A DNA stretch of 63,970 nt, the filler included, from Klebsormidium nitens (Eukaryota > Plantae > Klebsormidiophyceae), in NCBI GenBank assembly GCA_000708835.1. It is 6 parts of 6 records of this genome, joined end to end, with 100 filler letters (N's around TTAATTAATTAA, not from the genome) between each part and the next. Parts side by side here need not be neighbours in the genome. Positions count along the whole stretch, not along the records: positions 31,493 to 48,764 come from DF237968.1; 5 more parts are not named here. The stretch is one strand, 5' to 3'. Made by a program: the position numbers and the translations under genes. The notes beneath the pieces are model-generated. The model was not told the DNA's origin. It saw nothing but the letters and a program-made list of their open reading frames with translations, and did no database searches. Each line of letters begins with the position of its first letter. The stretch's first letter is position 1. Of the stretch, positions 31,493 through 48,864 are shown one piece after another.

Positions 31493-31687
31493 TGTTCAGC
31501 GCCGCTTCACTTTGCGATATTTAGCAACAGCCCTTTCATAAAGTCGGGTATCTGCTATGTTCTCACGATTCAGAGTGAACTGGTGGCTTAGATACAGGCC
31601 AAGAACCGTCACTAAGCTGGTGAGCACGGCAAATAGTCCAGCTACAATTGCCGTTATGACGGGGACCCAAGGTGTTAGTTGAGCCAT
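31493..31687 (-). CDS. Short ORF with an N-terminal transmembrane helix, running into the gap
   Basis: MAQLTPWVPVITAIVAGLFAVLTSLVTVLGLYL...; no homology recognised. Confidence 0.3.
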
Positions 31688-31999
31688 CTGCCTTGTGACA
31701 TTAGAATCTTGCCAAGATCTTGGAGGGTGGTCGCAGGTTAAAAATGCATGTGACCGCTGTATTGCATGGAACCACACAGATGCCTTCCTGGAGCCGTCTT
31801 CAAGCCATCCCTTATCTAACCAGCACTTCCATCTGCATTTAACTCACCGTCGATAGAGATAACAATCCTTGCAGTGTATCTTGACTTGGTCGGTTTGTGC
31901 CCGTGGCTAGCTGCAGACCTAAGCCGTCGTTAACTGTAGATCCCAATCCTCATCTTCGACCGACCAGTCTTTAACGTAACCCTGCAATCGAGCCAAATA

Positions 32000-32304
32000 C
32001 CGTAGTGGCACGGGAATCCGCGGTCTGGCGCTGCGAATAGTTATTTTCGATCTTTCTACATTTTCGCGGGCAACTTGAGCAAATTTTCACATTTTCGCGG
32101 GCAACTTGAGCAAATTTTCACATTTTCGCGGTCAGCCTATAAGCACCCAAACTAGGGCTTATTTCCTTAACTTCGGGCCTTTTCTGCTTGCTGCTGTCAG
32201 TCTCTAATTTGTCGACATTTTCGCGGACTGGGTCCGCATTTTACCGTTTTTTTCGCGTCGCTCCTTTTCGGATTATTTTCCCGCGAATTCCCATGCCACT
32301 ACGG
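32000..32304. mobile_element. Tc1/mariner-type MITE (305 bp, TA target duplication) with internal 31-bp tandem repeats
   Basis: TA|CCGTAGTGGCACGGGAATCCGCGG ... CCGCGAATTCCCATGCCACTACGG|TA (22/24 TIR identity). ACATTTTCGCGGGCAACTTGAGCAAATTTTC occurs twice plus a partial copy at 32058-32131. Confidence 0.85.
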
Positions 32305-32796
32305 TAGTCTTCCAGACCGGAACATGATGTCCCGTTTAACTGTGACTGGTTCTACAAAGCCTATCGCTGCGGAAAAACAGGAAACCCCGTCAGCTCAGGG
32401 GCCGTAATAAAATTGAAATGTCGACCCTCCCCCGCCCACCCAAACGGAAAATCTCGGAAAAACGCGAGTAACCAACATACTTTACGATTGAAAATGGACC
32501 ATACAAACCCTCTTCGACTCCCCCGAGATCGGAAGTGGGCTAGTTGAAGTCCGTCTTCACTAGCCTGCACGGGGGCATGCTAGTGCTTCACAGACCCATT
32601 ACAATCCCAAGAACGACCCTGAGCGTCCTCCAACGCCTTTTCTGTGAATTGCGCCTCTGTTTTGCTGCGCTTCTGCTTGAGCTGTGCAATGAAAGAGAAG
32701 CTGCCCTCTCCTTTTTCAAATAGTTACATGAATGATAGAACAAGTTCCAGTTGAAATGCCACAGTGGAATGAACCTCATGTGCAAAGAAAGATCTG

Positions 32797-33303
32797 TCAA
32801 AACCCCTTCTTTTGTTCACCCAAGGCCTCTCCTGCTGCCAGCTCTGAGTGCGTCTTGTTTGATGTAGTGACGAAAGGGTCGTCCCTGGCCCGCGAATATG
32901 CTGGGAGGTCTATCGGCACGAACGGCGAGATCCTGCGGTCTCGTGACCTCTTCCGTAAGTACATCACACACAGTGCAACGATGACACTCGTGAAGGCAAA
33001 GAGTGGGAGGAGCTGTTCAAAGGACAAACCCCACTGAAAGAAGGGGACAATGGCCTTGACGAAGCCCACCCCCTTTTGGAAGAGATTGCCCTGGCCCTCT
33101 GCTTGCACTCTTGTGACAGTCCCCACCGTTTCTACTGTGCGCAGAGGGGGGATCACTGGACGGGGCGTGGCGCTGGGGGGCGGGTCCGGCTCTGCAGCGA
33201 CTATCTTGCTGAATCGGTTGATCAGTTGCCGTCCCGGTTCCATCCTCGGCGAGGGCCCAGCGTTCAAGGCCCTCCTGCTGGCTGCTCGGATGTGCTCCAT
33301 CAT
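32797..33303 (-). CDS. Viral hypothetical membrane protein, 168 aa
   Basis: ATG-initiated, one TM helix (LLPLFAFTSVIVALCVMYL) followed by a basic stretch, 22 bp from the neighbouring viral ORF. Confidence 0.7.
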   Translation of the reverse strand: MMEHIRAASRRALNAGPSPRMEPGRQLINRFSKIVAAEPDPPPSATPRPVIPPLRTVETVGTVTRVQAEGQGNLFQKGVGFVKAIVPFFQWGLSFEQLLPLFAFTSVIVALCVMYLRKRSRDRRISPFVPIDLPAYSRARDDPFVTTSNKTHSELAAGEALGEQKKGF

Positions 33304-33325
33304 CTACTGTATTGTGGCTCTAATT

Positions 33326-35167
33326 TTATCCATTGGTTGGCTTGCGGCCACTGTACACGTCTGTGATGCTGAGGGCGTACGGGTTGTTTGCTAGCTGTCT
33401 CTTTGCCATTTCCAGGTCCGAAAACCTCGAGTGGGGCGTCTCAGCTGGCTGCTTGTAAGAGGTGAGCTCCCCCAACTCTCGAGAGTATGCGACTCTCTGA
33501 TCGGTAGGGAGCCCCTCTCGCGTGACGAGCCCTGGTGGCTTGTGCCTCGTGTCTCCTCCGATTGTTGCGGCGCTCATCATGCCAGTCAGCCGTGCTTGGG
33601 GCCCGGGGCCTTGAGAGCGGTCTGCTCTTGGTGGTGGCAGCTCAACTCTGCCAAAGTTTGGGCCCCGTGGGTTAGGCCCCAGCTTGTTTCCCGCGTAGCT
33701 GGTGTCTCCCAGCGTGGCCCGTTCCGTCTGGCGCACCTTCCTGCCGTCTTCTCCCATCCAGTCCCTCTTGACCTGCCTCGTGTGGGCCCCCACAGGATTG
33801 CCCGCATACCCCTCGCCTACTGCCTTTGAGCGCAGCGTGCTCCTGAGCACGGCACCATCACGGACTTCCCCCTTTGCTGCAGCAGTGGTGTGACGGCTAG
33901 CATTGATGCTCAGTGCGTTCTTGGTGTAACTGTCAGAGACTTGACGAAGGGTCCTCGGTCGAACCATCTCTCCAATCGACCCAATGTGCTCCTCACCCAC
34001 CGCTGATGCCATGTTTGCAAAGCCATGATCGCCCAGCAGGACCTCCCTCTTGCCTGCCCGGTGCGTGTTTGTGCCATCGGCATAACCCCCAGGGCCGACC
34101 ACACCTGCATAGTTGACACCTGCAGAAGAGGCAAAGAACGCGTTTGGATCCACGTTCCTGGGGCGCCCGTCCCTCTGCCATGTGTCAAACCTCTGTATGG
34201 TGGCGCTCGCGTCCGACCTGCCCGGCGGCCCTGGTAAGTTTGTGATTGGGACAGACCTGCTCTGCTCCTGCATCGTGGAGAGAACGTCAGGGCGCAGCAT
34301 CTTGCCGACATAAGGGGCGGAAGTTGCAACACCGGGCCTCTTCCTCCCCACATCCATCGACGTCTTTGGAGCCTTGTGCGATGGCACTGCATCGTACCGC
34401 GTTGGGCCTTCGGTGATTGGTTGCCCCCCAACAATCAGCCCCCCTGGCAAGTTGTTCCGATACTGCCCCACGTTGTCGGGCATTATGCGGAGGAAGGGGT
34501 GGAACCCGCCGGAAGGAGGTGCGTCGGGTGGAAGGCCGATGCCGGGGCCAACAATTTGACTCTGTAAGGGGGCTTCGTTGTTCCTGAATGCGCTCACCGT
34601 AATGTGCTCGAGCTGTGCATCTCTTGCGTCTACCATGTTTGCCCCCGTGTTGACGTTCGGGGTGGGCTTAAAGAGGGCGCCGGGCGGCTCATGCGCGTCC
34701 CTGTGGCCGAGAGGGTCCGATCCGGTGAAGCTTTCAATCCGACTCCTGCTGTTTGCATCGCTGTGGAACTGCGACTTGCTGCTCCGGAAGAAGGGAGCCG
34801 TGGGGGCGCCGTCACCAAAACGGACCATCTTAACCGGCCCTCTCACAACGTCTACCCCTGCGGCACGCCGTTCCTCACGGAGCGGCACTGCATGGGCGCT
34901 CATTGCGTCCACACATGCCCTCTCAACACCTTGGATGCTGTCAAAATTCGATACGTTTGGTTGACAAAAGGCATTTGGTTGCAGGTACATGGAGACCCTG
35001 GGGTTCTCCATCGAATTCATGCCGTGTGCGTGCCGTGGGTCGTATATATACCTCGCGTCCTCCGGCAGCCTGTACTCTTCGGGGACAGGTTCCTCGAGGG
35101 TGCGCTGCTTCCGTTCAAAGTTGAGGAGTCCCAAGGTGGCCAGCCCTCCGATGATGGCCAACTCCAT
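33326..35167 (-). CDS. Conserved NCLDV virion-type protein, 613 aa (family seen in prasino-, chloro- and mimivirid genomes; DUF5899-like from memory)
   Basis: N-terminal hydrophobic MELAIIGGLATLGLL; motifs PFFRSSKSQ...ESFTG, ALFKPTPN and FRNNEAPLQSQIVGPGIG...GGFHPFLRIMP. Intact and intronless. Confidence 0.75.
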   Translation of the reverse strand: MELAIIGGLATLGLLNFERKQRTLEEPVPEEYRLPEDARYIYDPRHAHGMNSMENPRVSMYLQPNAFCQPNVSNFDSIQGVERACVDAMSAHAVPLREERRAAGVDVVRGPVKMVRFGDGAPTAPFFRSSKSQFHSDANSRSRIESFTGSDPLGHRDAHEPPGALFKPTPNVNTGANMVDARDAQLEHITVSAFRNNEAPLQSQIVGPGIGLPPDAPPSGGFHPFLRIMPDNVGQYRNNLPGGLIVGGQPITEGPTRYDAVPSHKAPKTSMDVGRKRPGVATSAPYVGKMLRPDVLSTMQEQSRSVPITNLPGPPGRSDASATIQRFDTWQRDGRPRNVDPNAFFASSAGVNYAGVVGPGGYADGTNTHRAGKREVLLGDHGFANMASAVGEEHIGSIGEMVRPRTLRQVSDSYTKNALSINASRHTTAAAKGEVRDGAVLRSTLRSKAVGEGYAGNPVGAHTRQVKRDWMGEDGRKVRQTERATLGDTSYAGNKLGPNPRGPNFGRVELPPPRADRSQGPGPQARLTGMMSAATIGGDTRHKPPGLVTREGLPTDQRVAYSRELGELTSYKQPAETPHSRFSDLEMAKRQLANNPYALSITDVYSGRKPTNG

Positions 35168-35191
35168 GTGCTTACTCTATCTATAATACAA

Positions 35192-35677
35192 TTATTGCGT
35201 GGCTGCGTCCTTTAGGAGGAGGCGCGTGTCGAGGGCTCGATCAGGCTCCCGGTTGGGCATGAGCTGGGGGTTGCAAGGGCCGAGCCATTGAGGCCCGATT
35301 CGTTCCACCTCGATGCCCACAGTGTCACCTCTCTGAGATTGGCGGAAGCGGTGGATGGGTGGGATCATGCCTCGGACTGGCATGCGACGCCGGGGCTCTG
35401 CTGTCGACGTTGGTGGCAGCTGTGCCAATCCTGGCTTGACTGTCTCCCTGAAGAGGCCCCGGAGGCGGGAGTCGACGTCGATCCCCGGGCGGTCAGGATA
35501 GACGCTGGTACAGGTGAGCCCAGAGTCGACATCATCATATGGGCAGGGGCTGTTTGCGGGAGTGGGGAGGGGGCTCAAAAAGTACTCTCCGGGCTTGGTT
35601 GACTGGATGACTGCTTGTTCGAGTGCGTATTTGATCCGGACCTGCCCACTGTTCATGTCCCTTATGTACTGTTGCAT
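35192..35677 (-). CDS. Small conserved NCLDV protein, 161 aa (minor-capsid-like)
   Basis: IDVDSRLRGL and C-terminal DTRLLLKD motifs resemble small conserved giant-virus proteins; intact. Confidence 0.6.
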   Translation of the reverse strand: MQQYIRDMNSGQVRIKYALEQAVIQSTKPGEYFLSPLPTPANSPCPYDDVDSGLTCTSVYPDRPGIDVDSRLRGLFRETVKPGLAQLPPTSTAEPRRRMPVRGMIPPIHRFRQSQRGDTVGIEVERIGPQWLGPCNPQLMPNREPDRALDTRLLLKDAATQ

Positions 35678-35704
35678 TTATTATTTGAGCAAGCTGCGCA
35701 CTCC

Positions 35705-37351
35705 TCAGTCAGATTGAGGCTCCTCTTCCTCGCCGCCATCTTCAAGTCCTTGCACGGCTACTTGCCGCCACTTGTAGCCTTTAAGAATTGAGCCTTCGGC
35801 TAGTGCACGCTTCAATGAAGCTCGTGCAATCCTCATTGTCTTCTGAACGCTCTGGATTGATGCAAAGCGCTTCAAGACATCGTTTGTTAGTGCATGAATC
35901 TGCTCGATCATCATCCCATTCGAGCGCACTCGCTCGGCATGCAAGGTGCAGCGAGACAAATACTCGTTCCTCAGATGCTCATCACACTCGTACCAAGGGC
36001 AGAAGTAGTGGCCTCCAGACTTGGTCCCTTTCTTGATTGCTGTACTAATTGCAGCCATTCCACTAAACTGCCTGTCCTCTGCAGCCTCCTTCATGTCTTT
36101 AAAAACTTTGACAATATGGCTTCTGTCAAGGGCAATCATGGCCAAAAGACCCTTCTTACTGGTTCTGCTTATCACTGTGTCACCAATGTCCTGCACGGTG
36201 TCATCAGGTAGAGTCCTGTCCAGCTTCGCCCAGCGGAAACCCTGGTAAATTGTCCGCTTGTCGATGGCGATCCTGATCAAGTTGGCTGCAGGAGCAGCCC
36301 CCTCAGCCTGCCTTGCTGCTTCAGCGCACCCTGGATAGGTTGCAAGAAGCTACTTACCATCACTCGAGTATCTCTGGATCTTGTCCCCACGTCTCTGTGT
36401 ATAACGACGGTCGTCTGGCGGAGTGTAATATGGGATGGGTTCCTTGACTTCTGTGCCAGTGAGGTTGCTTTGCAGCAGGCTGTTCTTGTAGCGTAAAAGC
36501 TCAAGCTCTACGAGCTGCTCCGTTGTTGCACGATCATTATAAGTTGTCTGATGTCGCTTTGCAATCTGGACAGCAAGTTCCACTTGCTCAGAATTCATCT
36601 TGAACACCTCCCGGTTCGAGTAGTGCCCGTTATGGATAGGTTGCTTGTACACGTGCTCAGCAATGCGTGGATGCCCTTGCAGGAACTCCTCGAACTGGCG
36701 GTACAAGCTGACCTGGAAGACCTCAAAGATCTGCATTGCTCCAAACTCTCTCTCCAAGCCTACTGCACGGTCCTTGAGGTCCTTCGTACTCCCAATCTTG
36801 ATCAAAGACTTGGAATTTGGCTCGTCCCGTATCTTGCCAAAGTACACCAGACAGTCCCCCTTCTTGAAAGCATTGATGAGGGTGGTATGTCGAGCAGCAT
36901 CCGTTGCTGCCTTTGAAACCTTTGCCTGCTCAACAAGAAGCTCTTCAATCTTCTGTGCTGCCGCTGCTTCTGCAAGGCGTGTAGCTTCCTTGGCCTCGTA
37001 CACTGCAGCCTCTAGATCGTAGTGGCCCTTCTGACGGATCGTCTCGATCACCTGTACCACCCACTTCTGGAACGGTCTTGCTGCTGGCTTGCGGGACTGC
37101 ATGAGCAGGCGGTACAACCCACGCTCCGTCAGGTAGGTCGTCTCTTGCATACCACCGAGGGAGTCAACGGTCTTTACGACCTTCTCGTCCTCATCATAGC
37201 TTTGGAGTGTTGCCCGGATGTTGGTCATGCCCAGCACCGTGCCAATGTCATTTGCCTTGAACATAGGTCGCATGCCATCCCACACGATGTCCACTTTGTA
37301 GCTGGTGCCATCCATCACAAAGGCCTTGAGAACGTCGAGCTCGTGTACCAT
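35705..37351 (-). pseudogene. Bro-N + GIY-YIG/T5orf172-like + NUMOD1-repeat gene interrupted by one in-frame TAG (36350-36352)
   Basis: Bro-N: PMFKANDIGTVLG...YLTERGLYRLLMQSRKPAARPFQKWV. Nuclease-like: VYFGKI...IKIGSTKDL. NUMOD1-like: KIQRYSSDGK*LLATYPGCAEAAR and MIEQIHALTNDVLKRFASIQ. ORFs 36350-37351 and 35705-36280 are in the same frame. Confidence 0.85.
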
Positions 37352-37437
37352 GTTTGCTTGTTACCTCAGTCCGTGGTTAAAAACAACGGTATTTAAACGC
37401 GCCTCCTTAGCCACCCGGTCTCTGCTGCTGGCCGGTT

Positions 37438-39060
37438 TCACGCGCGCCTCCACCCAATCCTTCTTGCAGCTTTCCCAGCTCGTGTGGTGTAATCGTAGTG
37501 GCCATACCTGTACCGCTTGCCACCGCTCCTATCCAGGACGAAACCTGACTTCACGCCCTTGGGAAATGGGTATGGCTTTCTCCTCGGGGCGTAACCATCA
37601 GGGCCCTTAACCAGCCTCCACAGCCCCTTGGTGTCCTTTGTATAAGCCCGACCTCGAGGGCTGTGACCGGATGCTGTCAGCAGGCTGTTAAGCTTCAGCT
37701 GCCTCGTGGAGCGGCCTCCCTTGCGAGGTACGCCTGGCGAAAGGCGCCAGACACCGGTCTTTGGGTTCTGGACATAGTGCCTGCCCCCCGTGCTGGTCGC
37801 GAACCCCGGGCGGGACATGGTGAGCCGCCTCAGAAGCTCCTGCTGCCTCTTGGATGGCTCTCTCTGGCGCTTTTGCCGCGTGCCTTTGCCTGCAACGGGC
37901 GGTGAGCGTTTTGGGACCGGTGTCCGCGGGGGCAGTGAGACACGCTTCCTGCCCGGTATCATCACCGGGACGGAGCTATTTGTTTTGTACCGGATGACTT
38001 GTGGGGGTGTCTCTCTGAAACGCACGCGCTTCCCCCCTTTGCGCAGCACCGGGACCCCACTCGAGTGCGCGCTATGGTAAGAGGATGCTGACTTCTGCTG
38101 GCCCCATGCCTTTGCCCTGTTGGCACTCAGAGTTGGTTTGTCCTCGGCGGCAACAAGTGTCCGAAAGTAGCGCGCAGCCTTTGCCTCTGGGTTGTACCAA
38201 TCATACCTGCGGCCAGCCTGGATGGCATTCACGTTCATGCGGAGCCCCGTCTTCTTGTCGTTCCAGAGCGTGTTCATGTTAGCCCCCTGATCAAGGGCGG
38301 TCCTGACTTGCGTTGCCCTTGCTTTGGGCAGTATCAGGGCGTACCCGAAATCGATGATTGTCACCTTCTCCGACTTCTCGTCGATGAAGATGTTGGCTTC
38401 GTGCAGGTCCGCATGGACGACCCCTAGGAGCCAGAGCGTGAGGATAGCCCTCTCGATGAGTGCGTACTCGAAGCCCGTCAACCTGTTTGAACGCCGAGTC
38501 AGGAACTCTCGGAGCACAACGCCTGGGGCCTCACCCATGACTGTGATGAAAACCATCCCCTTCTCGCCTCCGTCCAGGAGGCCCGCATAGAAGATGGGCG
38601 GCACGACCTCGCTGCCCCGGACCTTTGCACCTTGGAAGGTCGTCTCTTGGCTGTGGATCCATGCCTGCATCTTGCACTCCATCCGAGCAGCAGCAATGTC
38701 GTCAAACTTGTCCAAGCGGTGGACCTTGATGATCACCTTTTGTGGAGCGCTTTGTGGATTGCCAATAACGTCAGATGACAGGGATGCAAAGAACTGTATG
38801 TGGGACGCCTCTGAGACATTGGTGGCGCGATACGCAAGGCCGTGAGCTCCAGCCGACAGGAAGCTGAGCTTTCCGCCTAGCCTCAGCCCTCCAAGCACCT
38901 TTTTCCCCTCCTCTTCCGTGGGCCTGAAAGCAGACGGTTTCAAGTGGCCGGTAGATGGCATGGTGGCATTCAGAAAGGGGAGGGTGACCGTGTTGCGCTG
39001 CCCTCTCTCACGTGCCCAGTGGCTGTACGGCCCTCCTCCTGCTGCTGCGCTTAGGCTCAT
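37438..39060 (-). CDS. Viral-type Ser/Thr protein kinase with a very basic Arg/Lys/Pro-rich C-terminal tail, 540 aa
   Basis: GAHGLAY, VIIKV, VVHADLHEANIFI and IIDFG kinase motifs; tail contains GRHYVQNPKTG and GRAYTKDTKG; intronless and intact. Confidence 0.88.
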   Translation of the reverse strand: MSLSAAAGGGPYSHWARERGQRNTVTLPFLNATMPSTGHLKPSAFRPTEEEGKKVLGGLRLGGKLSFLSAGAHGLAYRATNVSEASHIQFFASLSSDVIGNPQSAPQKVIIKVHRLDKFDDIAAARMECKMQAWIHSQETTFQGAKVRGSEVVPPIFYAGLLDGGEKGMVFITVMGEAPGVVLREFLTRRSNRLTGFEYALIERAILTLWLLGVVHADLHEANIFIDEKSEKVTIIDFGYALILPKARATQVRTALDQGANMNTLWNDKKTGLRMNVNAIQAGRRYDWYNPEAKAARYFRTLVAAEDKPTLSANRAKAWGQQKSASSYHSAHSSGVPVLRKGGKRVRFRETPPQVIRYKTNSSVPVMIPGRKRVSLPPRTPVPKRSPPVAGKGTRQKRQREPSKRQQELLRRLTMSRPGFATSTGGRHYVQNPKTGVWRLSPGVPRKGGRSTRQLKLNSLLTASGHSPRGRAYTKDTKGLWRLVKGPDGYAPRRKPYPFPKGVKSGFVLDRSGGKRYRYGHYDYTTRAGKAARRIGWRRA

Positions 39061-39144
39061 TGTGATATATCTGCGAGAGATAATGATCCACGTTCGTGCC
39101 AGGCACTTTCGATTTTATTTTCTCGCTGTAGTGTATTGGCGAGC
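39061..39144. promoter_or_regulatory. 84-bp intergenic region between the divergent kinase and MCP genes (putative bidirectional viral promoter)
   Basis: Head-to-head arrangement and AT-enriched relative to the flanking ORFs; function inferred. Confidence 0.5.
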
Positions 39145-40395
39145 ATGTCAGGAGGTCTTCTCTCTTTGGTGGCTCAGGGCGCTCAGGATGCTTATCTCAC
39201 GGGGAGCCCCCAGATCACCTTCTTTAGGATCGTCTATCGCAGGTACACCAACTTTGCGCTTGAGGCCATCGAGCAGACTTTCAATGGCGCCGCAGATTTC
39301 GGACGCCGTGTTACAGCCACGATCAGCAGGAACGGAGACCTGGTCACGAACATGTACCTGCAGGTGACTCTCCCGGCGCTGACTTCCAACACAACGCATA
39401 CGGAGCTGGGGTACATCAATGCGGTGGGGCATGCCCTGATGCGGAATGTGGAGGTTGAAATTGGTGGGCAGAAGATTGACAAGATCCCGTCCGAGTACAT
39501 GGAGATCTACCACCAGCTGTCGATGCCCGAGGAGAAGAGGAGGGGTTACGGTGAGATGATTGGGGCCCCAAGCCTCAGTGACACTGTTCCCTCGTCCAAC
39601 CGCACGGTAGCGGACACTGCTCTCTTAAACCAAAACACCCAGAGGACGCTTTATATCCCACTCATCTTCTGGTTCAACAGGGTTCCCGGCAACGCGCTAC
39701 CGTTGATTGCCCTTCAATATCACGAAATCAAGGTCAATATTGAGTTCCGCCCTCTGAACGAGCTCTACAAGTCGAACGTGGCGGTCACTTTCAACCCTAT
39801 TCCGTCCATTGTGAGCGCGTCTCTGTACGTTGACTATGTTTATCTAGATACGGACGAAAGAAGAAAATACGCATCCAGTTCGCACGAATTTCTGATAGAG
39901 CAGCTCCAATTTACCGGTTCGGACACTTGGAGTGGCGGTTCGGGCACCAGCAAGATCCGAATGTCCTTCAACCACCCCGTTAAGGAGCTCATCTGGACCG
40001 TCACGCCCAGCGACAGTGCGACCGCTGACCCCGTCAACGGCAATCTGTGGTTTGACTGCGGCGAGCAGAACGGTGGCACGGACCTCATGACCACCGCCAA
40101 GATCCTGCTCAACGGCCACGACCGCTTCCAGGAGCGGGCCGCGCCCTACTTCCGGCTGGTGCAGCCCTACCAGCACCACACCAGGATCCCCAACCGCTTC
40201 ATCTACGTCTACAGCTTCGCCCTCAAACCAGAAGAGCACCAACCTTCGGGTACTTGCAATTTCAGCAGGATCGACAACGCTGCGCTCCATCTGGGGCTCA
40301 ATACGGAGGACCCCGCCAAGATCTCTGTATATGCAGTGAACTACAACATTTCACGTATCACGTCCGGTATGGCAGGGCTTGCGTACTCGAATTAG
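39145..40395 (+). CDS. MCP: NCLDV major capsid protein (double jelly-roll), 416 aa, intact
   Basis: MSGGLLSLVAQGAQDAYLTGSPQITFF...YRRYTNFA...EQTFNGAADFGRRVTATISRNGDL; LPLIALQYHEIK; FNHPVKEL; HQPSGTCNFSRIDNA; ends GMAGLAYSN. ATG at 39145. Confidence 0.98.
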   Translation: MSGGLLSLVAQGAQDAYLTGSPQITFFRIVYRRYTNFALEAIEQTFNGAADFGRRVTATISRNGDLVTNMYLQVTLPALTSNTTHTELGYINAVGHALMRNVEVEIGGQKIDKIPSEYMEIYHQLSMPEEKRRGYGEMIGAPSLSDTVPSSNRTVADTALLNQNTQRTLYIPLIFWFNRVPGNALPLIALQYHEIKVNIEFRPLNELYKSNVAVTFNPIPSIVSASLYVDYVYLDTDERRKYASSSHEFLIEQLQFTGSDTWSGGSGTSKIRMSFNHPVKELIWTVTPSDSATADPVNGNLWFDCGEQNGGTDLMTTAKILLNGHDRFQERAAPYFRLVQPYQHHTRIPNRFIYVYSFALKPEEHQPSGTCNFSRIDNAALHLGLNTEDPAKISVYAVNYNISRITSGMAGLAYSN

Positions 40396-40454
40396 GTATG
40401 GCCGGTCTGGCTTACGGCTCTCACAACGCTCAGGATATGGCCGGTCTCGCACAC
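40366..40454 (+). repeat. Three stacked copies of the MCP C-terminal coding motif (G/D)MAGLA(Y/H)
   Basis: GGT ATG GCA GGG CTT GCG TAC (40366-40386, inside MCP); GGT ATG GCC GGT CTG GCT TAC (40395-40415); GAT ATG GCC GGT CTC GCA CAC (40434-40454). Confidence 0.9.
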
Positions 40455-41618
40455 ACACTCACGTTTGTTCCTTTCCTTATATGTTATGGTCGGCACGGGT
40501 TTTTGTTTGTGGAGTCACAGCTCGTGCAGCATAAAAGATAATACCGGTTGTGATATGTTGCGTCCCAAACTTTGCCCACCCGCATCTGATCTGCAGATTG
40601 AATACTCAATGGCAATGCAACTTGCTCCTGAGGATTCTTCAATTCGTGATCGCCCGTTCTTTCTCTGTCCGTCTCTGATGAACCCGTGGATCGGCAGTGT
40701 CCTTTTCGTGATTAAGTGAGAATGATTCCGGAAAGGAGTGCAGCACGTATTGTGTTGCTTGCAAATCACACTGCCACTCTCATCACGCCCATGGAAGAGA
40801 GGGCGAACTACCACTTATTGATTACAAACCCATAGATACATGATAGCGACATACTTGTGACCAGATATACATAATCATAAAATGATATTGTGAACCTTGT
40901 CTGTCAAAGCTGTTGTAGTGCCGGTGCGCGTCGAGCGGCGGCACTGAGAGTCTTTCCGAGAGCCAGATTGGAGATGAGGCGTCAATGACTGCTGCGGTAA
41001 TATAGGCAGCGTCTGTCGGTTAGCTTGCAGAGCAGTCAGGCTCGAGCTATCCATCATGGAGCTGGCCGATCGGTTCAGAGCACTCTAGGTGCCAGCCTGC
41101 TAGCTCTTTCTGCTTGTATTGGCCGTGGAGATCTTCTCACAGCCGCGGCTTTCGGTCGCTTCGTTGACTTCTGAGGTGCTGAGGCACTCACTACTTGACG
41201 TCGAGTTAGCTTGGCCGACGCACGATTATGCGAATGGATGTCGTACTTTTTCGCTTTGGAGTCCAATACACGAGATGCATGCAGCGAAAGTGCAGATTGG
41301 TGTAACTGCAGGGCAAGCAGAAAGGCATATACATGGCATAGCATTTTCTACCAGTTCATTGCCTTATGAGGGAGTTCTCGTGATCTACATGGTTATCTAC
41401 ATATCTTAATTTACCAGCTCCTGAGCAAGGGTCCACGTGTACACCATAATCCTACTTTCAAGGTCCAGAAGGCGTGAGCCTGAGCTTGCTCAGCTTTGGC
41501 GCCACAGCCGTCACACCTGCATCAATGGTCTTGTTGAGCACCAAGGCTAAGGCGATGAGGAAAGGTCCTAGAACTAGCCAGGCTGAAAAATACAAGGGGC
41601 CCCATCTCAAGATCTTGA

Positions 41619-43005
41619 TTACCCCAGATTGACGAATCTTAGTCTCCTCAGTTTGCTCAGCTCCAGCGCCAGGGCCACCTGGCCCGCATCACTAAACTTG
41701 TTGGATCCCAGATTGATAGAGCTGAGCCCCGTCAGCTTGTCCATCTCCAGGGTCAGGGCGTCAATACAGGCATCTCCAAGTTGATTGTTCTGCAGGTTCA
41801 GGGAGAGGATCCAGGATAGCTTGCCCAGCATTGGTGCCAAAGCTATCAAGCCAGCATCTCCAACATTGTTGCTGTGCAGGGATAAGGAGGTGAGCTCCTT
41901 CAACTTGCCCAGCACTGGAGCCAGCGCCACGGCACCTGCCTCACCAATTTGGGTGGCTGTTAGGTCCAGGTCAGTGAGCCCAACGATCTCATCCAGATTT
42001 GCCAGGCCTGTTGCCGGAACATCGTTGACTGCTAGGTACAAATTTTCAAGCTTTGTCAACTTAACCAGCTCCGGCGCCAGCGCTGTCCACCCCGCCTCCC
42101 AAAGGTAGGTGCCCGACATATCTAAGGAGGCAAGCCCTATTAGTTGGCCGAGAGCGGGAGCTAGGGCTTCTATGCTTGCAGCCTTCACAGCGCCACTCCT
42201 GAAAGCTGGGAAAGCATGATCCGCTGTCACATCAAGAGCTAGTGACGGCGCCACCACGTTCAGAGGATGGACAAGGTTACTCAACAGTATGGCAGGGATG
42301 GCGACATCATTGTTCTGAAGGGCAAGCGACATGAGACCAGTCAATTTGCCCAATTCCAGCATCAAAGCCGCCGCCCCTACATCCCCAACCTCATTGCTAC
42401 TTAGGTCCAGGCAGGTGAGCTGTGTTAGCTGGCCCAGCACTGGCACCAGCGCCTCCACACCTACATCCCCAATTTGGTTGCTATGAAGGCAACCAGGATA
42501 GCGCGGTCAGCTTGGCTATTGCAGGCACCAATGCCAACATGGCCGTCTCCCCGGTCACACTCTTTCCTAACTCGGGGATGGTGAACTGCCCCGTCAAGTT
42601 GCCGGGAATCAAATCAAGCGACCCCTTCAAGACCTCGCTGCCCCTGACGGCCAAAGAAGAGAGCATGGAGAGAGAACTCAGAAACATGAGATGTTGCTCA
42701 ATCTGATGTGGGCCTGTTTCGCAACTGGTCCCATAGAACGTGAGGTCGAGCTTTTCGATCCAAACCCCTGTTTTGTGGGGCTGTTCAAGTGAGTTTCTGA
42801 CCAACAACTTCAGGTATGTGAAAAGATGCTCCCATGGTGTTCCTATATCCACCCGAAACCGAAAACACCCACAGCTTCTGAAGAGTTGCTTGAACCTCTT
42901 GCAGGACAATTCCAGATTCATGCTCTGGTTTGTCGATCCATCGCCCCAAGCTGATTGTTTGAGAATCCTTGTCAGCAGCTCGTCCGGTAGAGCCTCCACG
43001 TACAC
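41619..43005 (-). pseudogene. F-box-like + ribonuclease-inhibitor-type LRR gene with a frameshift near 42490
   Basis: N-terminal VEALPDELLTRIL...LSCKRFKQL, followed by repeats of LTxLDLSxNxVGDxGxxALAPxL. Shifting frame at TTG|CCTTCATAGC restores the repeat L-x-LHSNQIGDVGVEALVPVL. A possible acceptor CCCAACAG lies just before 43004. Confidence 0.85.
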
Positions 43006-44373
43006 TGTTGGGAAGAGACGCCACTACTAGCACTTGTAGCAATACCTCTTAGCGACCGCCTCTCATTGCCAGCAATGAGGCTCTCTTTCAACACATGTTG
43101 GCGCAAAAATAAGGTTAAGGCGGGTACTTGCCCCAAAAGTGGAGTTGTCGGAGGGCCGCTTGAAATATCAGGATAGGATGCGCGGATTTTATCCGTCCGA
43201 TCTTTTTGTTGCACATGAGCTAGTTTGACAGACGTCGATGCATTGGATATTTCTACTGGTTGTAAGGTCGTTGGGAGGTTATTACTCCACGGCCATAGCA
43301 CTTTTTGGCAACGGGCTTGTCGAAAAGGGGTCCTCAAGGAGCAACATCCACTGCCAGATTAAACTGGAGGCCTAACCGCTTCATGATTACAAACTTGGTT
43401 ACAGTGCTTATTGCGAAAGGTCGTAGGAATGCAATATCATCTAGTTGTCAGGAATACGACCGAAGTCACAAGGTTGCACGTGCCCGATCCCCGCGAGTGA
43501 GAGCATCCGCCAGAGAATTGTCGGCGGAAGAGATGTATGTGCTAGTAAGCCGAAATTTGTAACAATCGGAGAGCCAAACAGAATCAGTAAGCAGGATGGT
43601 GCGTTGGACAAGCCAACTCAATGCAAGCTATATGGGTAACAACGAGGCTACCACCATAATGAGGTTGACCGTCAAGCCGGGAGGGCATCCCACCGGAGTT
43701 AGTTGCACGACAGAGAGCGAAGTAACAACGATTCACTTCACTTGATATTTCTGGGAAACAACACTGACACCCATGGTCTAGTGCTGCACAAGCACAAATG
43801 GGATCGCCAGGTAATAGCAGAATCATAGCCAGGAAAACCCTCAAACATGTTCTGGGCTTTTAAGACTGGGCAAGTGGTGTACTGCCATTACATGCGCAGC
43901 AGTCCATGGGGCATTTGCTTTGAGGAGCCAATTCACCCTATGAAAGTAGCCCGTGCAAAGCTGCATGGCTCAGAGCATCCACGCACATTTGCATTCCTTT
44001 CGAGCATTGGAGATGGGCCATACAATGCAGCAACTTGAGGTGCCCGGAATTGCACATTGCTTGTTGGTCTCAACAAAAGTTTTGAGAATACAAAAGAGCA
44101 ACGAAGTAGGTACATCCAGCTTCTACAATGTCGGCGCTGACAAAAAGTAAGTCTCGTATGCAAGGGCCCGTGTTCAAGATCAACCTAACACTCTCTGAAT
44201 CTGGGTACACAAAGCTGCTACACTGAGGAGTATTTACATCTGGTTTGGCGAGTGACTTATACAGAAACCCGGCCTACTCTAACCACCTACAACTTGCCGA
44301 CACCCTCAAATTTGAAATCCTCAAAAATCAAGAGCTTTATGTACAAGCCCTCTCTGATTGTCTGCTTGGTGAT

Positions 44374-47063
44374 TCAGCCGCAAACAAAGGTGCTCCGAAC
44401 TGTGTTCTCCGGGATATATGCGAGCGTAATTTGCGCCCTGCTCGCTATCTTGCTGACTTGTTTGTAGAACACCTCGAGCTGCAGGTGAGATTTCATGTAG
44501 TTGCAGTCTCCGCAAGCTGCCCTGGTGTTGAGAGGAGAGTAACCCTGCTTGTTGTCGACCCTGTCAACCCCATTGGTATGCACACCCTCAATGTTCTTCT
44601 TCCCGCAGATGTAGCACGGCTGTCGGACGATGTCTTTGAATTGGTCAGCAGAGAGCTCGAAGGGACGTCCGGGCTCTTTTGCAACCAGTTTGTACACTGC
44701 AAACTGTCCTGCCCGGTGGTGGTTTCCGAACAGTTCAGACGGGAAGTCAGATCGGACCCCTCCCTCCTTGACCTCCTGGATGTAGACGCATCTCTCAACG
44801 AAAGTCCGCGCGTCCACTTTCTTCTTCATCTCCCAGCAGTTGGTGCAGGTCGGCACGCAGTTGTCTGCCGTCCACCCCAGCGACAGATCCAGCCGGTGCA
44901 CTCCAAGTGGCTTCTGGTCCGAGTGCTCATCCCCGCAGAAGAAGCAGCACGAGTCCATCTCCTTGATCAGCTCCTCTGCGGTCTTGCTCTCCGGCTCTTC
45001 TTCTCCTTCAAAGCTGATGACGCGCACGCGGTTCCTGTGACGCGCCTGATCGGCTGCCCCCTTCGCCAGGTACCCCTCCGGGTCAGCAGCCCGGCGGCGT
45101 GCGCGCGAGTCCTTGCTGTACTGCGCCCACCTCTCCGGGTTCGCCTCCTTGCGGGCCAGCTTGGACGCCTTCCTGGCCGGGGTCTTCTCGTACTCGCGCG
45201 CGCTCCATGTCCGCCTCCGTCCTCGTCCTCTTTCCCCCGGGAAGTTTGGCCACGTAAGTCTGGCGCTTCTTGCGGCACTCGCTGCACCACCCCGCCCGCT
45301 TGCTGGTCTCCTCAAAGGCGAAGTCGGAGGGGTCCTTGATGCCGCAGCACTTTGGGTTCATGCACATCTTCTTGGTAACTCCCAGCTCCCGCAGAGCGGC
45401 GATCTCCGCAGCAGCCTTCTCCCTCTTTGCAGCAATGAGCTTGTCGTCCGACTCCTTTGCCGCGTTCCGGCAGGGCTCGCACGTCCTGAACTTGCAGTCG
45501 GGGGGCAGCTCCTTCTGGCAGCGATCCTTGCCACGGTACACGTTCGCACACACCCGCCCACCGCGTTCGGTGATGGCAGCCAGCTCCCCGTCCAGCTCGT
45601 GCTTCTTGCAGTACTGGGAGTTGTCAGCAGCCTTGTTGAGGCAGGGTTTTCCGGACGACCGCACGATAGCCAGGCACGTGCCGGGCTTTCTTGCGGCCGG
45701 TGCGGCCTCTTCCTCGTCCACGATCTCCCCGTCCTCAGCCTCCTCGGAGTTGTGCACCGTCTCCTCCTCTGCAAATCAACACAGGGTGGTGCCTAAGTCA
45801 CTCGCGCAAAAGCAGAGAATATATATCTCTCTCATAAAGTATCGCTCAAGATGTCCTCAAACTCTGGTTCCAACGTGTCAAGCAGCTCAAACGTGTCAAG
45901 CAGCTCAAATGATTCAAGCAGCTCAAACGTGTCCAGCAGCTCAAACGTTTCCAGCAGCTCCAACGTGTTCAGTTCTAGTGGTTCGAGTTCGCAACAGCCT
46001 GATAGCCTGATTGTATCTCAGCACCCCGAGCTTTTATGGCACACCACAAACTTCCCAAGAATCAGCTAATGAGGGCATGACTCACAGGCTTTCAAATGCT
46101 AGCAACGCTGCTGCGATGGTAGCCCCCAAGATAGCACCAGCCACCGAGCAACGAGCAGAAGTCACAAGGGCATCAGGCCAAGAAGCGTGGGTGATTCTTG
46201 AGTAGCTTTCCTGGTCTTCTTCGATGACCCTTGCTGCAAGTGGCACGCCTCCACCCAGGAGGGATGAGCTCAGTGCCCCTCTGAATATGTAGGTCGCACG
46301 CATTGTCATGCAAAAGGATCACAAAATTGGAAGACTTACCTCCCGCACTCTCATCCTCAGGTTTCTCTGGCTCCCTCTCCCGCTCACGCTGCGCCTGCTT
46401 GTACGCCCTGTACTCCTCGCGCAGCTTGATGCAGGGTTGGCAGGTGGTGCCTTCGTAGCCGTCAGGGAGCACCACCCAGCAACCGCGGGTCACGCTGCCA
46501 TGCCGGCTGCAGGTCCGCTTCCCGGCCGCCTCAGCCTTCTTGGCCTCCTCCCGGCGGCGAGCCTGCTCCTGCTCGCGCTTCTGCGATCCTGCAACCGCAA
46601 CCGCCTTCACCTCCTTGGCCCGCTCCCGGCACGACTTGCACCGGTCGGAGACTGGCTCTCCGCCTCCTTTTGCACGTCGCTCAGCCACAAAGTCAGCATC
46701 AGGCCGCTCCTGGTGGCAAGCGATGCACTCCTTGACGCCCTTCTTGGCCTTGGCCTTGTTCCTCTCTGCGGTGGCTGCGTCCCGCTCTGCCTTGTTGGCC
46801 AGGGAGCGCTCCCTGATCTTCTTGATGCATGCATCGCATGTAGACTTATCAAAGTCCAGGGGGAGCTCCGCCTTGTCAGAGCACTTTTGCTCACCGCCTC
46901 CGATGCAGAGCTTTACGCCACGAGCCGCTCGTTCTGCCTCCTCCTTCCTGCGGGTCTCCTCAAGCTCTGCAGACTTGTGGTGGATGTGGCACAAGCTCTT
47001 GCCTGCAAGCGCTTGGAGCGGGCATGGGAGCCCCTTTTTGGTAAGCTCACTGCAGGGTGCCAT
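44374..47063 (-). pseudogene. Virus-type Cys-rich protein with two HNH-like nuclease repeats; predicted 571-nt intron (45769-46339) and a (CG)n slippage frameshift near 45195-45203
   Basis: CSELTKKGLPC...CHIH and CLAIVRSSGKPC...YCKKH knuckles; CFFCG...GVHRLD...GWTADNCVPTCTNCWEMK and CYICG...NGVDRVDN..GY...N...ACGDCNYMK. G|GTAAGT donor and TTTGCAG| acceptor join in frame. Confidence 0.75.
45851..46069 (+). CDS. Ser-rich small ORF with 18-bp (NVSSSS) repeats, antisense inside the predicted intron
   Basis: ATG start. Differences between repeat units are mostly synonymous in this frame (AAC/AAT, GTG/GTT, TCA/TCC) and mostly non-synonymous on the minus strand. Confidence 0.45.
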   Translation: MSSNSGSNVSSSSNVSSSSNDSSSSNVSSSSNVSSSSNVFSSSGSSSQQPDSLIVSQHPELLWHTTNFPRIS

Positions 47064-47220
47064 CGCTGTCTTATTCTCTCTGGATCACTACTTCTGTCAG
47101 AGCAACGTTTGCTCGATGATCCACAGAGGATTGGAGCTAAGACAGATACGACAACAAGGAAAATGACAGAGGCTAAGACGGCTATGCAGAGGAGGATGCG
47201 AAGTGCCCTCTGCATCAACA

Positions 47221-47397
47221 CTAGGCTGCAACTGCTGCCAGCTGCTGTGGATAGGCCTTATGGGGGCAGAGTGTGTTGGGTGATAGGTGAAAACTGGGAG
47301 AGCGGTTGAACTTGAATCCGAAAAGGCGACCAACGACCAGTGTAAGAATGAAGAAGGCGATGGAGGCTGCTACCAGGATGCTCTCATAGTCGAGCAT
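47221..47397 (-). CDS. Small TM-helix ORF, possibly viral
   Basis: MLDYESILVAASIAFFILTLVVGRLFG...; no homology recognised. Confidence 0.3.
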   Translation of the reverse strand: MLDYESILVAASIAFFILTLVVGRLFGFKFNRSPSFHLSPNTLCPHKAYPQQLAAVAA

Positions 47398-47636
47398 GGC
47401 CAAGAGTAGGGAAGGCTGAAATCGAAGAATGCCAAAAGTAAGGGCTTGTTCTGACATTTATACTCTTTGCATACTTGGCCTCTAATGGCCAGAATGTGAT
47501 AACTTAATGGCCTGAGATGGCGGGAGCAAGCGAGGGCTGGCAGCGGGTGGCGTGACTTCTGCAAATGGACTTTAGTTTTTACCAAAAGTAGAAATTCTCA
47601 CAGTTTCTGACACAATTCTCGACCCTCTCCACAGAG

Positions 47637-48281
47637 ATGGCAGGCATGGCTTGCTCAAGCTTAAATCCACTCAGCAGCCCCATACTTATCTGCAAGCCTC
47701 GGGTTCGTGCGTTGGGTCCAGTGGTCCCATGCAAGACGTTCATGGAGCCTTACAGGGGCTACTCAAGCGTTTTTAAGGACATAGGCAGCACGCTGTCCAG
47801 AGAGTTGAAGCTCACCTCTGCACCAAGCCAGCTCGGTTACGATGCGCTTCATCCAATGACCGAAGCCAGGGCCAAGAAGAGCGTCAACGAGAGTACAGGC
47901 ATTGAGTACCTTTTGGAGCTGGAGGTCCGTGCTCCAGAATCCAATGATGCAGCCTTCAGGACCCTCGTCCACGCCCGTCCAGGCAGCTCCATCCCCGACA
48001 TGACGATCGCCGCCTTCCTCCAGCCCGGGCTGAGCGCAAGGCTCTCTCTGGAGATGACCCCAGAAGTTGGGGACGCTCCGGCAGCACTTGCACGCTTCTT
48101 TGACCAAGCAGATAAGCTAGCCATCCTCAACCCACAGGCCGTCCAGCAGAACATCAGGAAGGGCCGGGTCGGGTTCCAGACAGCCTCTCCCCTGCAGGAC
48201 CTGCCCACCTTCGAGAAGCTAGCCTGGAGCTTTGTCAAGGAGTGGCTGGTAGTGTCAAGAGGTGGTAGAAAAATAAGGTAG
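47637..48281 (+). CDS. Intronless hypothetical protein, 214 aa
   Basis: ATG-initiated ORF with protein-like composition; no family recognised. Confidence 0.5.
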   Translation: MAGMACSSLNPLSSPILICKPRVRALGPVVPCKTFMEPYRGYSSVFKDIGSTLSRELKLTSAPSQLGYDALHPMTEARAKKSVNESTGIEYLLELEVRAPESNDAAFRTLVHARPGSSIPDMTIAAFLQPGLSARLSLEMTPEVGDAPAALARFFDQADKLAILNPQAVQQNIRKGRVGFQTASPLQDLPTFEKLAWSFVKEWLVVSRGGRKIR

Positions 48282-48864
48282 ATGCGTGCAGGCTCTACAA
48301 ACAAACCTTGTGGAACATGTAAAACCGGTTCTATTCCTGCCCGCTTGTTCCCTTTGCAGAGAGTGCATTCCTCCTCGACGATACGCTGATGGTTGCAACT
48401 TTTTGCCATGTTGTTATTTGCCGCATGCACAACTGTTTTGTCAGTCCCTTGGTGCCTGTGATTACTTAACCTTACCACACACCTGCCCATGAGACGAGTA
48501 GTCAACCAGCATGCAATACCCACGCCTCACATGCCTATGTTGATACCCATGCGGCCTGGGCATCGCGGATCAAAGCCAGAAGTTAGCACGTCGCGGCCGG
48601 TCCGCAACAAGGGACCCTATTTGACGGTTAGTGGCAACCGTAGGGTTTCAATTGAAACCGCGCGGCTTGTTGACGTAATTACGCAGTTTTGATCCAAGCG
48701 TACTGCCTTCACTAATTGGATGACTGGCCGTGACCTTAAGGTTGGAAGGGCTTCTGGGTTGCTANNNNNNNNNNNNNNNNNNNNNNNNNNNNNNNNNNNN
48801 NNNNNNNNTTAATTAATTAANNNNNNNNNNNNNNNNNNNNNNNNNNNNNNNNNNNNNNNNNNNN

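Follow-up and report, generated by a model that had tools for sequence, protein, structure and literature searches.

A probable recent giant-virus insert on scaffold DF237968.1 of the streptophyte alga Klebsormidium nitens

Here we describe a block of giant-virus (Nucleocytoviricota) genes on scaffold DF237968.1 of Klebsormidium nitens. The scaffold lies within a window of 63,970 nucleotides, the whole stretch of DNA that was analysed, along which all positions below are counted. Sequence identity establishes that window positions 31493-48764 are the entire scaffold (17,272 bp, no N) of K. nitens NIES-2285 (GCA_000708835.1), which confirms the streptophyte-alga host proposed in a first-pass annotation of this DNA. 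That annotation had also read the locus as giant-virus DNA in the assembly of such an alga, and Pfam and PDB capsid matches bear this out.

Relatives were found via the major capsid protein (MCP) in Joint Genome Institute (JGI) samples 3300060284 and 3300060285 (contigs L003, L004, L005, and L092), with further relatives in one ENA assembly (ERZ26165376, L007), one SRA run (SRR11935584, L006), and a second K. nitens scaffold, DF237758 (L002). The features of DF237968.1 are listed here with their coordinates, strand, and, where applicable, the evidence for their assignment; ORF stands for open reading frame.

31998-32306, no strand assigned: element resembling a miniature inverted-repeat transposable element (MITE), 309 bp, with 26-nt terminal inverted repeats that are 92% complementary and TA at both ends
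32797-33303, minus strand: p168, small viral protein with a hydrophobic segment (L005 homologue beside P2)
33326-35167, minus strand: homologue of minor capsid protein P2 of Paramecium bursaria chlorella virus 1 (PBCV-1), 613 aa, uninterrupted (Pfam, PDB, synteny)
35192-35677, minus strand: p161, conserved clade-specific protein adjoining P2 (syntenic L005 homologue)
35705-37351, minus strand: Bro-N plus T5orf172 gene with one in-frame stop (Pfam, intact relatives)
37438-39060, minus strand: protein-kinase-like gene, about 300 conserved aa plus a unique 237-aa basic C-terminal tail (weak catalytic-loop matches)
39061-39144, no strand assigned: spacer between the kinase-like and MCP genes with a conserved block, a candidate shared promoter (comparison of five copies)
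39145-40395, plus strand: MCP, 416 aa from ATG, complete double jelly-roll (Pfam, PDB, AlphaFold)
41619-43005, minus strand: F-box-like plus leucine-rich repeat (LRR) gene, two adjacent ORFs in different frames (Pfam)
44374-45757, minus strand: Cys-rich, weakly HNH-like gene (about 460 aa in relatives) with one frameshift (L004, L005, profile)
45872-45968, no strand assigned: tandem repeat of 18 bp (5.4 copies) in the intergenic stretch separating the HNH-like gene from p296
46173-47063, minus strand: p296, Cys-rich, uninterrupted, viral (homologues at the same place in L004 and L005)
47221-47457, minus strand: small hydrophobic ORF of 58-78 aa, according to which start codon is used (L006 homologue)
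47637-48281, plus strand: p214 (annotated KFL_010190070), part of the viral block though outside the block of the first-pass annotation; an algal gene in the public record

The MCP matches the Pfam models Capsid_N (8.6e-56) and Capsid_NCLDV (4.8e-48), with each profile covered end to end. Against the PBCV-1 proteins in PDB it gives full-length alignments (332 bits with MCPv1 and 304 bits with Vp54; best E 8e-98), and this end-to-end alignment is what likens it to them. The description of the gene as an unmistakable NCLDV (nucleocytoplasmic large DNA virus) MCP therefore stands. An AlphaFold model of the protein (pLDDT 75, pTM 0.76) matched only NCLDV capsid proteins in a fold search, and a fold search of BFVD returned NCLDV capsids of many orders at 11-32% identity, with no discrimination between lineages. 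The top protein match of the ORF is a K. nitens UniProt entry named 'Major capsid protein'.

A second virion gene, the P2 homologue, matches Pfam DUF5899, 'minor capsid protein P2' (1.2e-12), and the P2 chain of PDB 6ncl/8h2i (5.7e-10). It is similar in length to PBCV-1 P2 and shares the DUF5899 core, the match being limited to about 130 residues. Its full-length relative is a 619-aa protein of L005, 65% identical in one frame; a pattern scan of metagenomes confirmed no P2 relatives, the patterns being too specific.

Gene order extends these assignments to the rest of the block. Homologues in the same order were found for nine of the 11 scaffold genes in L003-L007 and L092, the order being p168, P2, p161, Bro-N/T5orf172, the kinase-like gene divergent with the MCP gene, the HNH-like gene, p296, the hydrophobic ORF, and p214. 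The p168 protein is 37% identical (E 3e-24) to an L005 homologue at the same place next to P2, and p161 is 75% identical to a 159-aa L005 protein, with a ratio of nonsynonymous to synonymous rates (dN/dS) of 0.08. Homologues of p296 in L004 and L005 are 64% and 41% identical, respectively, and the small hydrophobic ORF shares 61% identity with an ORF of 59 aa in L006 that lies upstream of the p214 homologue. Neither Pfam nor PDB gave a match for p161, p168, p296, p214, or the tail of the kinase-like protein.

The viral nature of the roughly 15-kb block delimited in the first-pass annotation was upheld, but its limits (32797-47397) were not. The ORF at 47637-48281, previously taken as host flank on the right, is viral instead: p214 has a homologue in viral contig L005 (33% identity, E 3.5e-29), likewise placed after the p296 homologue, and an 80% identical homologue in L006. 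Because of this synteny, the viral block is taken to reach 48281, and from sequence comparison it would span at least 32797-48281, or at least 15.5 kb. A profile search of the 17-kb scaffold found none of the further hallmarks polB, A32 ATPase, VLTF3, D5, and SFII, which counts against any identification of the block as viral that asks for a hallmark beyond the MCP. The clade relatives L092 and L005 do carry VLTF3 and an A22 resolvase, and hallmark genes have been published from other K. nitens contigs (PMC5294986). Neither tRNA genes nor Rfam families were found on the scaffold.

We then compared the state of the genes with that of their relatives. Seven (MCP, P2, kinase-like, p161, p168, p296, and p214) are uninterrupted. 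The Bro-N/T5orf172 gene aligns in one frame with intact relatives of 542-551 aa and has one stop, and the HNH-like gene runs in two frames, with no stop, relative to its intact counterparts in L004 and L005. The decay proposed earlier is thus real in that two genes are broken, but it is slight, with one break each. The proposed intron gain finds no counterpart in the alignments, in which the viral genes are colinear with their relatives and contain no inserted stretches. The annotated introns are artefacts of gene models that fuse neighbours, joining P2 to p161, Bro-N to the kinase-like gene, and the HNH-like gene to p296, and one public gene model removes the true C-terminus of the MCP. The public K. 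nitens annotation of DF237968.1 is unreliable, and viral ORFs (for example, KFL_010190070) have been entered in it as algal genes.

Selection analysis bears on the age of this copy. Branch counts were taken from codons changed in only one of three close copies. Of the changes on the MCP branch leading to DF237968.1, one is nonsynonymous and 32 are synonymous, where the neutral site ratio is 3.3. Since these changes are nearly all synonymous, the copy has spent very little time in neutral evolution and its integration would be recent. The Bro-N gene shows 13 nonsynonymous and 55 synonymous changes on the same branch, similar to its intact relatives, which argues that its stop is recent as well. 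The corresponding counts are 18 and 20 for the kinase-like gene and 36 and 26 for the HNH-like gene, which suggests relaxed constraint on both.

The second K. nitens copy bears on how these sequences entered the genome. On DF237758, viral similarity begins near 8.5 kb and continues to the end of the contig; the MCP gene is frameshifted and the Bro-N gene truncated, and this copy lies about 6.5 kb from an intron-bearing host light-harvesting complex (LHC) gene upstream (Chloroa_b-bind exon). The two K. nitens copies could in principle be duplicates of one ancient insert that drifted apart later, an alternative left open in the 2017 study of this assembly (PMC5294986) and one with which the kinase-MCP pair and conserved spacer common to the copies would agree. 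Neutral drift of dead copies would, however, bring dN/dS to about 1, and between the two scaffolds the MCP has a dS of 0.89 but a dN/dS of 0.075, with 0.16 for the kinase-like gene. Values for the other genes lie between 0.04 and 0.32, and the MCP comparison with L004 gives a dS of 0.95 and a dN/dS of 0.09. Moreover, the DF237968.1 MCP is nearly as close to that of metagenomic contig L004 (90% amino acid identity) as to its K. nitens paralogue (91%). We regard duplication as very improbable: the copies diverged under the selection of replicating viruses, which points to separate integrations rather than duplication of one dead insert.

The MITE-like element is a further sign of residence in a host genome, together with the two broken genes and the divergent second copy in the assembly. 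It has the inverted ends, small size, and non-coding sequence of a MITE, and its interior holds a 31-bp tandem repeat (32053-32131). The TA found at each end could represent a duplication or belong to the repeat. A block embedded among host MITEs, as the first-pass annotation had it, was not recovered: the element is single, with no second copy among the remaining loci retrieved, of which about 23 kb is further K. nitens sequence, and its terminal repeat has no exact match in the JGI metagenomes.

We infer the integration of DF237968.1 from its paralogues and from the literature, not from the scaffold itself, and several observations weigh against it. No host gene and no host-virus junction were found on DF237968.1, and the scaffold ends (1.3 kb at the left and 0.5 kb at the right) have no match in any fetched locus. 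Nor do the searches establish the MITE-like element as a host repeat. Both broken genes are of a selfish, dispensable type that is breakable in replicating viruses also. The missing junction, together with an MCP essentially free of neutral decay and mostly intact genes, would also fit an unintegrated scaffold, that is, a free, persistent, or episomal virus contig from the NIES-2285 culture; most viral contigs of the assembly likewise have no visible junction (PMC5294986). Such a contig would not account for several divergent copies of single-copy core genes in one assembly, nor for a closely related copy, itself broken, that is physically linked to the host LHC gene. The two broken genes and the empty stretches of 1.2-1.4 kb are unlike the dense relatives, a MITE-like insertion is present, and the hypermethylation published for viral genes of K. 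nitens agrees with DNA embedded in chromatin (PMC12344493). An unintegrated virus is therefore an improbable source of the scaffold.

Taken together, we consider it likely that DF237968.1 is a recently integrated giant-virus fragment, one of several separate inserts, whose donor clade was most probably affiliated with Algavirales. In this scheme, a fragment of a giant-virus genome would have become part of the K. nitens NIES-2285 genome as one of several distinct related inserts. The fragment would represent a virion-structure neighbourhood (MCP, P2, small membrane-type proteins, and the kinase-like/MCP pair) with genes of mobile type (Bro-N/T5orf172 and HNH-like). Lacking replication and transcription genes, the piece alone would be inert coding DNA. 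Its entry would be recent, as changes on its own branch are almost all synonymous and only two accessory genes are broken. Its divergence from the second K. nitens copy would date to a time when it still replicated as a virus, leading to separate integrations, and the literature suggests that the host may silence the insert by methylation.

The order of the donor virus is less easily read. MCPs are poor order-level markers between Mesomimiviridae and the algal phycodnaviruses, which counts against the use of MCP likeness in favour of Imitervirales. Similar MCPs in IMG/VR are 46-58% identical, and no shared gene neighbourhood was found around similar MCPs in 80 IMG/VR loci. PBCV-1 provides the closest solved structure, yet more than 150 protein clusters (50% identity level) outscore it against the DF237968.1 MCP. 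Membership in the chloroviruses fails on this ranking, the PBCV-1 MCPs standing below the best 150 clusters, and on the kinase-like protein, whose tail, once thought to be chlorovirus-like, has no detectable relative or Pfam domain. Compared with PBCV-1, no PBCV-type adaptor domain was detected in it.

Classified references were assigned according to Aylward et al. 2021 and Schulz et al. 2020. Genomes of the prasinoviruses and of the Yellowstone Lake phycodnaviruses (YLPV) belong to superclade SC3 in the latter scheme and to AG_01 in the former. The best classified MCP match is an SC3/MGVL28 genome; close behind come IM_08, three IM_01 genomes, IM_12, and Aureococcus- and Tetraselmis-virus-like genomes. 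At 55-63% identity, the MCP is equally distant from SC3 (Algavirales-type) and Imitervirales giant virus metagenome-assembled genomes (GVMAGs), with 55-58% to IM_01, IM_08, and IM_12, and for this reason it does not decide the order. A neighbor-joining distance tree of MCPs, built with few references and no support values, places the Klebsormidium copies on a long branch of their own. VLTF3 of L092 is 51-53% identical to two YLPV genomes and one Prasinoviridae genome and 44% identical to the sole Imitervirales (SC10) example.

On the strength of the L092 VLTF3 identities and the published trees (PMC5294986), we favour, with moderate confidence, a deep-branching Algavirales affiliation on the prasinovirus/YLPV side rather than Imitervirales; as a reading of sequence comparisons, this would make YLPV/prasinovirus-type viruses (SC3) the nearest classified relatives of the clade, both by VLTF3 and by the best classified MCP match. 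The likeness stops at 50-60% identity, a long separate branch, and no shared order around the MCP (80 IMG/VR loci). The placement is tempered by its use of one extra marker taken from a relative, few classified references, and distance trees that carry no support values. In addition, PBCV-1, through PDB, is the only Algavirales isolate in the comparison, and PDB offers no Imitervirales MCP, 8rbs being EhV-201.

The first-pass annotation had called the MCP Imitervirales-like. A donor virus within Imitervirales (Mesomimiviridae-like) would explain why the majority of classified GVMAGs with similar MCPs, at 50-54% identity by tblastn, belong to that order, and the more than 150 clusters that outscore PBCV-1 point the same way. 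The SC3/MGVL28 genome as best match, the separate branch with its equal distance to both groups, and the VLTF3 of L092, which is nearer to YLPV/prasinovirus types, all speak against it, as do the published polB, A32, VLTF3, and MCP trees, in which the K. flaccidum copies fall in 'Phycodnaviridae' (PMC5294986). We consider an Imitervirales donor unlikely and retain the Algavirales affiliation.

The environmental relatives form a clade of some diversity. The JGI samples contain at least three MCP lineages, which are 89, 78, and 71% identical to the DF237968.1 MCP. Contig L092 (JGI 3300060284, Ga0590114_0012968) belongs to the clade, with an MCP at 71-77% identity, the same kinase-MCP pair, and a P2 homologue, and carries a lipase besides its VLTF3 and A22-type resolvase. 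Its MCP and P2 genes are each broken, with two frames and one stop apiece, and the kinase gene of L005 is interrupted by a stop. Streptophyte-like contigs occur alongside: L091 (143 kb, JGI 3300060284) and L008/L009 have sparse ORFs, PGSIP7_C, and no viral genes, and they carry tandem LRR genes related to the LRR gene of DF237968.1. The samples thus seem to contain a Klebsormidium-like alga. In view of the broken genes and the streptophyte-like contigs, the JGI clade contigs are probably inserts in this environmental alga and not free virions; no evidence of a free virus was found among the relatives. The JGI, ENA, and SRA sample codes yielded no mention in the literature. L008 had been considered as a viral contig and was dropped, given its sparse ORFs and its kinship with the host-like L091.

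As for the remaining genes of the block, the roster given earlier stands for the MCP, the P2-type virion ORFs, Bro-N, and the LRR gene, but the kinase, HNH-like, and F-box labels rest on weak matches. The Bro-N and T5orf172 domains are matched at 2.3e-18 and 2e-6 (Pfam). Matches of the kinase-like gene are limited to the catalytic loop: Pkinase scores 27.4 bits, below the cut-off of 31.7, APH is just at its cut-off, ABC1 is below threshold, and the best PDB match has an E of 0.03. The tail (37438-38151) comprises 237 aa with 24% K+R and 21% G+P, about 600 bp extra compared with L004; it matched no Pfam family at E up to 1 and has no counterpart in any relative. The HNH-like label comes from a family profile that matches the PacI HNH endonuclease at E 1.5e-4.

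The kinase-like gene is divergently paired with the MCP gene in L002, L004, L005, L007, and L092. The spacer between them contains a 21-nt block that is identical in DF237968.1, L002, and L004 and mostly retained in L005 and L007, even with synonymous sites near saturation between copies (dS 0.9-1.3). This block could be a shared, perhaps late, promoter element and is put forward as a candidate. A search of the relatives for a common promoter word upstream of genes gave nothing convincing.

Next to the MCP gene, a stretch of about 4 kb (40396-44373) that holds the LRR gene is absent at this place in the relatives. Its GC content is 0.506, compared with 0.554 for the viral block and 0.504 for the host part of L002. 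The LRR gene matches LRR_6 (7e-16) and LRR_14 (2e-11) in Pfam; the F-box match is below threshold (E 0.02-0.05), the F-box-like and LRR ORFs having been searched apart and not as a joined reading. The change of frame between them could reflect a single frameshift or else a short intron. The stretches of 1.2 and 1.4 kb that flank the gene gave neither an ORF nor a homologue. The slot itself is variable within the clade: the 4-kb stretch is missing in L004, and L005 (13259-14791) and L007 (6152-7675) have an asparagine synthase there.

Relatives of the LRR protein are all distant, at 39-49% identity. Some lie on the sparse, non-viral-looking JGI contigs L008 and L091, one such contig carrying the plant-type PGSIP7_C, and another adjoins viral genes on K. 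nitens DF237738 (L010). The LRR gene may be either host-derived and carried by the virus in a variable slot or part of host DNA that entered after integration. The viral-looking L010 (DF237738.1, 1-11887) has, besides this LRR paralogue, a YqaJ exonuclease, an HNH_3/NUMOD endonuclease, and a distant MCP paralogue that is 24% identical to the DF237968.1 MCP; a GH9 gene at its edge may mark a host junction. At the extreme left end of DF237968.1 (31496-31687), a 63-codon ORF with a hydrophobic segment resembles viral small membrane proteins in style and has no homologue in any fetched locus.

Giant-virus inserts of this assembly have been known since 2017 and were described again in 2025. Six MCP, five polB, six A32, and five VLTF3 genes were reported from it and placed with 'Phycodnaviridae', extended Mimiviridae being kept under a separate label, and insertion was argued (Gallot-Lavallee & Blanc 2017, PMC5294986). 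The polB, MCP, A32, and VLTF3 copies were multiple and divergent, on contigs dominated by viral genes, and NCLDV core genes were also present in transcriptomes of K. subtile, Interfilum, and Entransia (PMC5294986). In the giant-virus elements of K. nitens, the viral genes form clusters and are hypermethylated (Romero Charria et al. 2025, PMC12344493). As a full-length MCP in the protein set searched, that of DF237968.1 would have been among the six published MCPs. The locus belongs to a catalogued set (PMC5294986, PMC12344493), a point on which the first-pass annotation could not decide. DF237968.1 shares organism and assembly with the published K. flaccidum/nitens NIES-2285 inserts; the present work adds a gene-by-gene map, counts of the breaks, a selection analysis that favours integrations both separate and recent, and the relatives from environmental samples.

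Giant endogenous viral elements (GEVEs) of chlorophytes and the inserts of Physcomitrium patens and Selaginella (Maumus et al. 2014, PMC4083422) are likewise Nucleocytoviricota DNA in genomes of the green lineage, with multiple copies, partial decay, and silencing by methylation (PMC4083422). Unlike GEVEs, DF237968.1 shows only a 15-kb fragment of structural genes with very low decay, and the moss inserts have been assigned to a different lineage, 'Pitho' (PMC5294986).

These results add detail to what is known of the K. nitens inserts. The DF237968.1 copy is almost undecayed, and the K. nitens copies diverged as viruses and not as dead duplicates. KFL_010190070 and several fused gene models are viral ORFs mis-annotated as algal. 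Environmental samples hold close relatives, in part broken, alongside streptophyte-like contigs. The findings can be used in cleaning the K. nitens gene set and in choosing markers for population surveys of Klebsormidium. Giant viruses have not, to our knowledge, been isolated from any streptophyte alga or land plant, which leaves endogenous copies as the sole trace of such infections close to the origin of land plants. This was pointed out for the present genome in 2017, and the 2025 work strengthened it. We offer as a tentative proposal, held with less than even confidence, that the scaffold and its relatives represent a roughly family-level, Algavirales-affiliated lineage that is specific to Klebsormidiophyceae and still circulating, with very recent, repeated, and independent integrations that are ongoing. 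If this is true, repeated independent integrations would continue in the terrestrial relatives of land plants.

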